From positions 62,001 through 126,000 of the forward strand of contig CAJFCJ010000025.1 in NCBI GenBank assembly GCA_904063045.1: a stretch of 64,000 nt of DNA, in the 5' to 3' direction. This stretch comes from Dimorphilus gyrociliatus (taxonomy: Eukaryota; Animalia; Annelida). This document shows positions 4,119-6,311 of the stretch, piece after piece. How positions within the stretch are numbered: the first letter of the stretch is position 1; every line of letters begins with the position of its first letter. Position numbers and translations under genes: made by a program. The notes beneath the pieces are model-generated. The model saw nothing but the letters and a program-made list of their open reading frames with translations. It was not told the DNA's origin and made no database searches.

Positions 4119-4163
<45 letters not shown>
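4119..4163. repeat. (TA)n microsatellite
   Basis: Pure TA run, seen directly. Confidence 0.95.
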
Positions 4164-4170
<7 letters not shown>

Positions 4171-4398
4171 TATAAATACGTATACATGAAAAAGTATATA
4201 AATGTATATATATATATATAATTTTTTTGTTTCTTTTTCTATTGTAAGCAAAAACAAATTCATAAGTAAAGCATTTATAAGAAAGTAAAACGGAACTATA
4301 AAAACAAAAGATGTAGATACGTAACATACATATTTTTTAAATCAGTTCGGAAACCAAAAAGAGAGAAAACAAAAAAAAAAGAAGAGTTTTATAATTGT

Positions 4399-5091
4399 TC
4401 ATTGCAATAGCGTCGGATTTATCGTAATAGTACACCCCCGATGAATGTGTTGGGAGATTTGATGCTTCAATCTAGATACCTGTTCCTTTAGTTGATTAGA
4501 AGATTCGGACAACTTTGCATTAATGTTCTTTAATTCTTTAACTTTTCCTTCGAGATTTTCAATCCTTTCCAATTTTCTAAATCGGCACTTTCTGGCGGCG
4601 ATACGATTTCTTTCTCTTTTGTGTTCTATCTTCAATTTTTCTTGGTTGTCCATGTTAACTGGGGAAACGGGTGGGGAAGAGACGCATGTTGGAATGGGCG
4701 TAGGATTTTCCCTTTTTATTTCTGTTGGAACGGTATTAGCGACATTCTTTGCTCCAGTTGGAGTAGGCAAAAATTTCGGTTGACCTCCACGCTGGGCGTA
4801 GACACTGTTCAGGGCCTCAACGAAGCCTTTAGCGTATTCCTCTTCTTCTTCGGTGGCAGGTTTCGGAGGGAATAGTATAGATGTTGTTGGAGTTGGTGTT
4901 GTTGTTATGCCGTTCAGATTTAGGAGCTTTTCAACTTCTGGTGAGGCTAATTTCAGCATCTGAAGATCGGGCGAGTTGATGATAGGAGGCTTCATCTTTA
5001 ATCCATTCTGATTTAACTCCAGAAGCAACGTTCTAGGTTTCGTTGGTTTCTTCTGATCGTATAAACTGTGATTTTCGATGTTTTTTATCAT
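4399..5091 (-). CDS. jun: Jun (AP-1) bZIP transcription factor, intronless, 230 aa
   Basis: JNK-docking-like KPRTLLLEL; phosphosite motifs NSP, KLASP and TTTPTP; GFVEAL helix; PPVSP degron-like motif; basic region RNRIAARKCRFRKLERI; five-leucine zipper ending in HIHRGC. Confidence 0.97.
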   Translation of the reverse strand: MIKNIENHSLYDQKKPTKPRTLLLELNQNGLKMKPPIINSPDLQMLKLASPEVEKLLNLNGITTTPTPTTSILFPPKPATEEEEEYAKGFVEALNSVYAQRGGQPKFLPTPTGAKNVANTVPTEIKRENPTPIPTCVSSPPVSPVNMDNQEKLKIEHKRERNRIAARKCRFRKLERIENLEGKVKELKNINAKLSESSNQLKEQVSRLKHQISQHIHRGCTITINPTLLQ

Positions 5092-5173
5092 ATTGAAGAA
5101 TATCTATGAGTAAGTTTGTTGTGAGTAAGGTTTCAAACCGATTTCTTTCTCTCGATGACGAGCACTGTTTAAT

Positions 5174-5339
5174 GGAATTTCCCAAGCGCTGTTTATATAG
5201 GTCTGAATAACCGCTTATTTTTAGTGATGATGTCACAAACTCGGCTGCTGATTGGTAGTTATTTGGGATTTTCTATTCCGCCGACGTGACGTAAAAGGTG
5301 AGTCAGCGTTTATACAACGTGCATGGGATTCATCCGGAA
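5174..5339 (-). promoter_or_regulatory. jun proximal promoter with clustered transcription-factor motifs
   Basis: Read toward the gene: ETS-like CCGGAA 5334-5339, AP-1 TGACTCA 5299-5305, CRE-like TTACGTCA 5287-5294, CCAAT 5251-5255, TGACATCA 5228-5235, MEF2 CTAAAAATAA 5215-5224, TATATAAA 5192-5199, NF-kB-like GGGAAATTCC 5174-5183. Confidence 0.85.
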
Positions 5340-6263
5340 ATTAATAAATACATTATTTTATTAACTATTAAAAATCAAAAAATAATTATTGCATGTATTT
5401 AAAATTGAAAATTTTGATTTTATACGAAAATGCGTTGAATAACGCAATCGCTCCGAAATACGAATGTTCGAATAAAACGAGATCACATGATGTTTACGTT
5501 AGTCTAAAGTTATCTAAATACGCACATGCTTGTTCTAGGTTCCATTAAGGTTTATTTATTAATGATCAAAACGTCATTTTTCTTCATATTAAAGTAATAA
5601 AATGCAAATAATTATCAATGTTTCTCTTTATTAGTAATATCTATTTATTATATTTGAAATTAATCTTGTAGACGTAGTATTCTCAAGAGTTGTTTTAGAT
5701 CAATAAAATTCGTTTTATAATTCAATTAACATCCAAATAACTACATCTAAAAAAATAATAATAAAGATAGAAGGGAAAAAATAATTTGAAACTTGCTAAA
5801 AAAACAAAAATAACGATAAAATAAAGAGAGAATGGGTCTTAAAAACTGGTAAAACACATATATATATTATAAACTGTTAATAACTATACGTTAAGAGAGT
5901 AACAATAACAGGTTATTGACGATAAATAAGTATACATCTTTTAATCAAGCGGACATTGACCCTCTTTCTTTCTCCTTTAGGATTTTTTTTTGTTTTCTAC
6001 AAATTAATACGAAAGTAATAACTCCCATGAAGAATGTTTAAGTACTTCCCCGAAAAAAACAATTATTGATCGATAAATGCGCTTTATATAATATTACTAT
6101 TAAAGTAAAGCATTAACTGTAAATATATTTAATAATAAAGAATAAAAAAAATAGCAGATTCTCCCCATAATAAAATTTTATTGATGGATAAAATATTTTT
6201 TTAATTGTTCATAAAAAAGAGTCTCTTTTTAGAATGTTTTTTTTTTATTATATTCTATTTATT

Positions 6264-6267
6264 ATAT

Positions 6268-6307
<40 letters not shown>

Positions 6308-6311
6308 ATAT
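6264..6311. repeat. Perfect 48-bp palindrome ATATTGTC-(TA)16-GACAATAT
   Basis: The arms at 6264-6271 and 6304-6311 are exact reverse complements around a TA run. Confidence 0.9.

Follow-up and report, generated by a model that had tools for sequence, protein, structure and literature searches.

A row of CCAAT, ATF/CRE-type, MEF2 and TATA sites before the jun gene of Dimorphilus gyrociliatus and its likely counterparts in other protostomes and in mammalian c-jun

Cis-regulatory DNA turns over fast, and promoters and enhancers can usually not be aligned between phyla. To our knowledge only a handful of non-coding elements common to protostomes and deuterostomes have been reported, and the bilaterian-wide conserved non-coding elements, for example those near the SoxB2 and Id genes, are distal developmental enhancers. 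The system considered here is the promoter of the immediate-early gene jun, whose CCAAT/jun1/MEF2 architecture is already textbook knowledge for mammalian c-jun. A 64-kb stretch of the genome of the annelid Dimorphilus gyrociliatus (contig CAJFCJ010000025.1, positions 62,001 to 126,000; hereafter the window) carries jun on its minus strand and, upstream of it at 5192-5255, a row of CCAAT, ATF/cyclic AMP response element (CRE)-type, MEF2 and TATA sites, which is compared below with the vertebrate promoter and with the jun promoters of other protostomes.

In mammals the CCAAT footprint is said to have been placed at -91, by Rozek and Pfeifer in 1993. The human c-jun sites lie at -91 (CCAAT), -71 (jun1) and -59 (MEF2/RSRF), with a distal ATF-type site, jun2 (TTACCTCA), at -190, and mammals have Sp1 sites where most protostomes have a second 8-bp site. 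At -72/-63, human JUN has the AP-1 site GTGACATCAT (PMC11108773), jun1 and jun2 are occupied by c-Jun/ATF2 (PMC2685101), and MEF2 controls c-jun via p38 (PMC2628930). A published Jun-TRE (tetradecanoylphorbol acetate response element) probe runs ...GGGGTGACATCATGGGCTAT (PMC2441799), while a c-jun MEF2 probe reads GGGCTATTTTTAGGG (PMC6470251, PMC4339472, there cited to Shin & Han 1999). Since the two probes overlap, the mammalian core is TGACATCA, 4 nucleotides (nt; TGGG) and CTATTTTTAG. For the chicken, a JUN primer table (PMC11508107 supplement) gives a fragment 12 of 113 bp which, less 20 nt of overlap and a vector arm of 25 nt, leaves 68 nt that begin at TAGCCAAT and end in ...GATAAGT. The end of GATAAGT falls 60 nt after CCAAT, and this equals the length of the human layout taken here as reference (15+8+4+10+4+7+6+6).

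The row of sites before Dimorphilus jun

An intronless open reading frame (ORF) of 230 amino acids on the minus strand at 4399-5091 was identified as the jun coding sequence (Pfam Jun 7.6e-20, bZIP_1 2.4e-15), and a word-based protein search found its closest relatives among insect, mollusc and annelid Jun/AP-1 proteins. The row lies 101-164 nt 5' of the ATG. Read on the minus strand from 5255 to 5192, it consists of CCAAT, 15 nt, TGACATCA, TCA, CTAAAAATAA, GCGG, TTATTCA, GACC and TATATAAA. The CCAAT box (5251-5255) is followed by a jun1-type 8-bp ATF/CRE-type site (the 8-mer, 5228-5235), identical to the human jun1 core, and 3 nt further 3' by the MEF2 site (5215-5224), which fits YTAWWWWTAR exactly. 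The slot between the MEF2 site and the TATA box (5192-5199) is held by TTATTCA (5204-5210), a degenerate copy of the 7-bp AP-1 site (TRE). An initiator-like AACAGT (5164-5169), the same in the sister species, lies 30-33 nt past the first T of the TATA box and ~75 nt before the ATG. For the predicted 5' untranslated region (5092-5168) the 5' limit was set from TATA geometry. The start of transcription is predicted near 5166-5169 from this geometry and from the 97% conserved leader described below; given a start at ~5168, the CCAAT box, the 8-mer and the MEF2 site would stand at -87, -67 and -56.

The initial annotation had placed a jun promoter with CCAAT, 8-mer, MEF2 and TATA at this position, and this is borne out by the sequence together with the Pfam Jun and bZIP_1 matches. 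It had also claimed that the worm reproduces the mammalian order and spacing. This is supported: the mammalian order is borne out in part by papers and agrees with that of the worm, and the 15 nt between CCAAT and 8-mer are shared. The distance from 8-mer to MEF2 is 3 nt in the worm vs 4 nt in mammals. On the mammalian side the 8-mer, the 4 nt and the MEF2 site are taken from published oligonucleotides, while the 15-nt distance from CCAAT comes from the published numbering, the chicken arithmetic and the position -91 of the CCAAT footprint. The worm 10-mer GTGACATCAT is identical to the human JUN -72/-63 site in 10/10 positions, although this match is partly a lineage-specific coincidence, since the Dimorphilus orientation departs from the spiralian norm at two central bases.

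Conservation among protostomes and in a sister species

Seven further jun loci were compared, from the annelids Paralvinella and Capitella, the nemertean Tubulanus, the brachiopod Lingula, the molluscs Octopus and Crassostrea and the insect Periplaneta (a cockroach). At 200-340 nt 5' of the ATG, each of the seven has the same row, in which CCAAT is followed by an ATF/CRE-type 8-mer, a MEF2-type site, an AP-1 site of 7 bp and a box of the TATA type. The jun loci of the damselfly Ischnura and the sawfly Athalia, which were added later and bring the insect orders to three, carry the same row. In the motif table, which spans 11 promoters and in which the Lingula row was read by eye, the CCAAT box is invariant (11/11) and the spacer between CCAAT and 8-mer measures 15 nt in 10/11, the oyster having 17 nt. 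The remaining spacers vary within 2-4 nt (8-mer to MEF2), 4-6 nt (MEF2 to AP-1) and 2-6 nt (AP-1 to TATA), and the whole span from CCAAT to TATA is 57-62 nt. The MEF2 slot of the other ten promoters is filled by an exact consensus in eight and by a site one base off in Paralvinella and Periplaneta, while the AP-1 slot reads TGAGTCA, TGACTCA, TTAGTCA or TTACTCA in nine other species and a TATA-type box stands at the corresponding place in all eleven promoters. The nemertean, the brachiopod and both molluscs share the 8-mer TGATGTCA; Paralvinella has TGATGTAA and Capitella AGACGTCA. Most species have a second 8-mer 5-6 nt 5' of CCAAT; Dimorphilus has none at that place. The module which the initial annotation had expected in other spiralian jun promoters was found in these six, as well as in the three insects.

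Two sequence profiles were built from these promoters. The first, R1, used sequence only; it drew on the six spiralian loci listed above and on Periplaneta and contained nothing from Dimorphilus. It gave one match in the 64-kb window, at 5180-5258 on the minus strand (27.7 bits, E 9.7e-8), and in the 78-Mb Dimorphilus genome the jun promoter was again the top match (E 1.2e-4), the next best reaching 19.6 bits (E 0.037). The runner-up matches were near noise, one lying before an S-adenosylmethionine synthetase gene and the other amid unrelated reading frames, and were set aside. Single R1 matches were also found 5' of jun in the two insects outside the model, Ischnura (40.5 bits, 1.8e-11) and Athalia (27.8 bits, 1.6e-7). 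The second profile, R2, built from spiralian promoters only, found one place per insect locus, the expected one, in the cockroach (5.8e-9), the damselfly (7.1e-11) and the sawfly (2.9e-6). Sequence similarity thus suffices to align the promoter across Spiralia and insects. A permissive regular expression for the row matched once per locus in 10/11 promoters, missing Lingula, with no other match in 456 kb and 0 in 200 shuffles; it weighs less than the profiles because it was written after the data had been seen.

The single sites are far less specific than the row. TGACATCA on its own occurs at chance level (2 in the window vs 1.46 expected), and the loose pair TGAYRTCA-N2-4-MEF2 was found 27 times in the 78-Mb genome vs 12 times for a reversed control. 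The pair alone is not unique, given these 27 occurrences, and it is the full row together with its position before jun that singles out the locus. The composite CCAAT-N10-20-TGACATCA-N0-8-MEF2 occurs once in the window and gave 0 matches in 100 shuffles.

The Jun protein of the sister species is 89% identical to that of Dimorphilus and was found on three Logan contigs (L001-L003), which we regard as genomic DNA because they span the promoter and end in simple repeats. Alignment of the module showed that 37/38 bases of the motifs (CCAAT, 8-mer, MEF2, TTATTCA and TATATAAA) were identical in the two species, including 7/7 in TTATTCA and 8/8 in the TATA box, while only 19/26 of the spacer bases within the module (73%) and 57/81 of the 4-fold degenerate sites (70%) were identical. 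The difference is significant both for motif vs spacer bases (Fisher p 0.006) and for motif bases vs 4-fold sites (p 5e-4). The sole motif change, CTAAAAATAA to CTAATAATAA, affects a degenerate W and retains the fit to MEF2. This contrast is the pattern to be expected of functional sites with free spacers between them. Outside the module, identity is 70.5% in the A/T-rich spacer at 5346-5440 and 64% beyond 5580. The predicted leader at 5092-5168 is identical in 75/77 positions (97%) vs 87.5% for the coding sequence and the 70% of the 4-fold sites, which suggests that the leader is constrained, possibly for translational control or RNA stability.

Origin of the row and competing explanations

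The row of Dimorphilus is, in our judgement, likely to be an orthologous copy of an ~80-110-bp promoter of the protostome ancestor, most likely of the bilaterian ancestor, and we infer its homology with the vertebrate promoter. The interval 5169-5258 on the minus strand is, as part of the same likely reading, the proximal promoter of Dimorphilus jun. With somewhat less assurance we favour, on balance, that an array of ~100 bp, from the distal 8-mer to the initiator, has been kept with near-fixed spacing since the bilaterian ancestor, and that the CCAAT/8-mer/MEF2 core within it shares its origin with the mammalian region -91/-50. The proposal of the initial annotation, a cis-regulatory module conserved across the protostome-deuterostome split, is supported; the promoter alignment it had suggested now covers annelids, molluscs, insects, a nemertean and a brachiopod, while the vertebrate side enters through published oligonucleotides and primers.

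Several observations weigh against this history. The orientation TGACATCA is seen in Dimorphilus only, apart from a second upstream site in Tubulanus, the spiralian norm being the flipped core TGATGTCA; the insect 8-mers are degenerate (TGACGTGA, TGACGGCA, TGAGGACA), and so is the AP-1 slot of Dimorphilus itself. The vertebrate half of the comparison rests on short published oligonucleotides, a chicken primer table and the CCAAT position of -91 attributed above to Rozek and Pfeifer, and searches with the Jun proteins of the worm, Tubulanus and another spiralian returned only protostomes among the best 120 matches. The chicken sequence just 5' of GATAAGT cannot be read as an AP-1 site; hence the AP-1 slot is probably not common to vertebrates. 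Factor binding at the worm sites is argued from analogy, the worm start is a prediction from geometry, and Logan contigs cannot strictly prove a start.

The best of the alternatives accepts the conservation of the jun promoter within protostomes but holds that its likeness to mammalian c-jun is convergent, NF-Y, Jun/ATF2 and MEF2 having been recruited independently in the same order. The sampling leaves room for it, as the loci compared are all from protostomes. The 8-mer of most spiralians differs from that of mammals in orientation, its distance to MEF2 is 2-3 nt in spiralians vs 4 nt in mammals, and the chicken primer sequence shows neither the AP-1 slot nor a canonical TATA box, vertebrates having GATAAGT instead of the latter. 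However, the order of the sites is identical, the 15-nt spacer of 10/11 protostomes fits the human numbering (with CCAAT at -91), the distance from CCAAT to the end of the TATA-like sequence in the chicken (60 nt) falls within the protostome range, and the insect 8-mer-MEF2 spacers of 3-4 nt bridge the gap between spiralians and mammals. As an independent rise of the same four-element order and spacing before the same gene is unlikely, we regard convergence as an improbable account, though the one that deserves most attention after common descent.

A second alternative takes the module for an upstream or intragenic regulatory element, with transcription starting elsewhere, for example at the second TATA-like sequence GTATAAAC near 5310-5317, 110 nt upstream, or further upstream still. 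It could appeal to that sequence, to the conserved distal block at 5441-5580, which could be part of another promoter or exon, and to the fact that the worm start is a prediction from sequence. Yet the TATA box and the initiator-like CAGT stand at the canonical 30-33 nt and are unchanged in the sister species, and a TATA-type box occupies the corresponding slot in all eleven species. In Periplaneta, contigs from seven runs were collinear with the genome, and those of six runs start 174-182 nt 5' of the ATG, i.e. 43-51 nt past the initial T of the corresponding TATA box, none entering the module; this agrees with a start directed by the TATA box, as assemblies commonly lose extreme 5' ends. We regard it as very improbable that transcription starts elsewhere. 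The Logan contigs of Crassostrea, also considered as start evidence, proved to be collinear genomic pieces with scattered ends and were uninformative.

Finally, a functionless chance cluster of common short motifs in AT-rich DNA, for which one might cite the chance frequency of TGACATCA, the recurrent loose pairs and the MEF2-like and TATA-like A/T-rich strings that are common because the genome has ~30% G+C, is hardly credible, and the profiles that pick the jun promoter genome-wide, the motif table, the sister-species footprint and the empty composite shuffles already contradict it.

Neighbouring features, predicted function and known systems

A number of further sequences accompany the promoter. 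A Rel/NF-kB-type decamer, GGGAAATTCC (5174-5183, minus strand), stands 3' of the TATA box and 5' of the predicted start; its sister-species form is GGGAATTTCC, both forms fit GGGRNWYYCC, and a role for NF-kB is putative. GGAAT..TCCC-like strings also occur, 5' of the module, in Capitella (GGGAATTCCC), Tubulanus and Paralvinella. Upstream of the row, the minus strand carries a CRE-type site, TTACGTCA (5287-5294), and a consensus AP-1 site, TGACTCA (5299-5305), 32-50 nt 5' of CCAAT and about 120-135 nt before the predicted start. In the sister species these read TGACGTCA and TGAGTCA, the latter being the other consensus form, so that both changes are within or towards the consensus. It is possible that TTACGTCA is the counterpart of the distal 8-mer of other protostomes, or of the mammalian jun2 site.

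Further upstream, a distal block at 5441-5580, on the minus strand about 250-390 nt 5' of the TATA box, shows 92% identity to the sister species vs 64-70% for 4-fold sites and flanking sequence, and holds the inverted repeat TGCGTT-N4-AACGCA; it may be an upstream enhancer. An Rfam search found no RNA family in the promoter or in this block. The sole matches in the jun region were sub-threshold noise from the long TA microsatellites that flank the locus on both sides (window 4120-4190 and about 6264-6311).

Two short sequences recur around the module in other species. The 11-mer CCCAYAATGCA occurs once each in Paralvinella (L004 5556-5566), Capitella (L009 5627-5637) and Lingula (L010 5637-5647), 72-82 nt 5' of the CCAAT box, and its presence at three loci indicates that homology reaches further upstream; in Dimorphilus the only trace of it is a shortened ATCCCATGCACG near 5318-5329. 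In Tubulanus, Lingula, Capitella and Paralvinella, CACGTT(G/T)TG follows the initiator-like site at about 5-20 nt, just past the predicted start, with CACATTTTG as the Octopus form. It is absent there in Dimorphilus, which has GCACGTTGTA upstream at about 5311-5320 instead.

Near copies of the 8-mer and MEF2 pair were located elsewhere in the genome (G000:C2:2767905-2767924, G000:C7:3814787-3814806 and G000:C8:265980-266000). One such pair reads TGACGTCA-TT-CTAAAAATAA, with a 2-nt TT spacer like that of spiralian jun promoters. These pairs might mark further immediate-early genes; no evident ORF was found near the pair at G000:C2:2767905-2767924 (L013).

Analysis of the gene neighbourhood showed that jun and a MutS5/MSH5-like gene (Pfam MutS5_N, MutS_III, MutS_V) stand head to head in Paralvinella, Tubulanus, Crassostrea and Lingula, which looks like a conserved spiralian microsynteny around a common intergenic region. 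The arrangement is not kept in Capitella, where the neighbour is FBXO32-like, nor in Dimorphilus, where MutS_V gave no match on the jun contig (C25). The Dimorphilus assembly (349 contigs, 78 Mb) encodes a MEF2 protein whose MADS/MEF2 domain is nearly identical to the vertebrate counterpart, and SRF and NF-YA genes are also present.

By analogy with mammalian c-jun, the predicted occupants are NF-Y at the CCAAT box, a Jun/ATF2-type bZIP dimer at the 8-mer, MEF2 at the A/T-rich site and Jun/Fos at the AP-1 slot, in a layout of CCAAT, 15 nt, 8-mer, 2-4 nt, MEF2, 4-6 nt, AP-1, 2-6 nt and TATA, with the initiator about 30 nt past the TATA box. The CCAAT, 8-mer and MEF2 part would be the counterpart of the mammalian -91/-50 region. 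The centres of successive sites lie about 21, 11-13, 12-15 and 10-14 bp apart, i.e. one or two helical turns, which suggests an arrangement of the factors along one face of the helix. Induction may proceed through phosphorylation of factors already bound, by the mitogen-activated protein (MAP) kinases JNK and p38 acting on Jun/ATF2 and p38 and ERK5 on MEF2, and the outcome would be rapid induction and positive autoregulation.

A promoter dissected in mammals has, in at least five protostome phyla, recognisable orthologues that share site order and the 15-nt spacer, and it probably belongs to a small set of promoter sequences retained since early bilaterians. If the vertebrate link holds, the immediate-early wiring of jun (NF-Y, Jun/ATF2 autoregulation and MEF2 input) is older than the protostome-deuterostome split, and the MAP-kinase input through Jun/ATF2 and MEF2 would rank among the most ancient cis-regulatory circuits still traceable at the level of single bases. 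The promoters also form a natural experiment in promoter grammar, testable in small, tractable animals, in which the CCAAT-to-8-mer distance, the MEF2 core and the site order are fixed while 8-mer orientation, spacer letters and loss of the AP-1 slot are free. A literal-term search of open-access papers and preprints, which cannot prove absence, found no account of the module outside vertebrates.

The closest described system is the mammalian c-jun promoter, which likewise stands before an orthologous intronless gene and has the order CCAAT, 8-bp ATF/AP-1-like site and MEF2; if the worm start is at ~5168, its three sites would lie within 4 nt of the human positions. The two differ in the 8-mer-to-MEF2 distance (4 nt in mammals, 3 in the worm and 2 in most spiralians), and most protostomes have the second 8-mer 5' of CCAAT, unlike mammalian c-jun. 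Past MEF2, a 7-bp AP-1 site and a canonical TATA box follow in protostomes, where the chicken has ...GGTCGCTGATAAGT. Binding and MAP-kinase control have been demonstrated for mammalian c-jun, whereas the worm module is known from sequence. Like the elements near SoxB2 and Id, the jun promoter is alignable between protostome phyla and, probably, with deuterostomes as well; unlike them, it is the core-proximal promoter of an immediate-early gene in which each conserved block is interpretable as a known factor site.

Two other systems share single features with the module. The endoplasmic reticulum stress response element (ERSE), CCAAT-N9-CCACG, is read by NF-Y plus ATF6 and is alike in principle only, in that CCAAT stands at a fixed distance from a bZIP half-site and NF-Y acts with a bZIP factor; the jun module has a 15-nt spacer and a full 8-mer, followed by MEF2 and AP-1 sites. 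The ATF site of dp5/Hrk, TGATGTAA, binds c-Jun/ATF2 and ATF2 dimers in vitro (PMC2685101). Promoters of this type resemble the jun module in their 8-bp CRE-like variants, TGATGTAA being the very variant of the Paralvinella jun promoter, but theirs are single sites in another gene, without the fixed CCAAT, MEF2 and TATA neighbours of jun.

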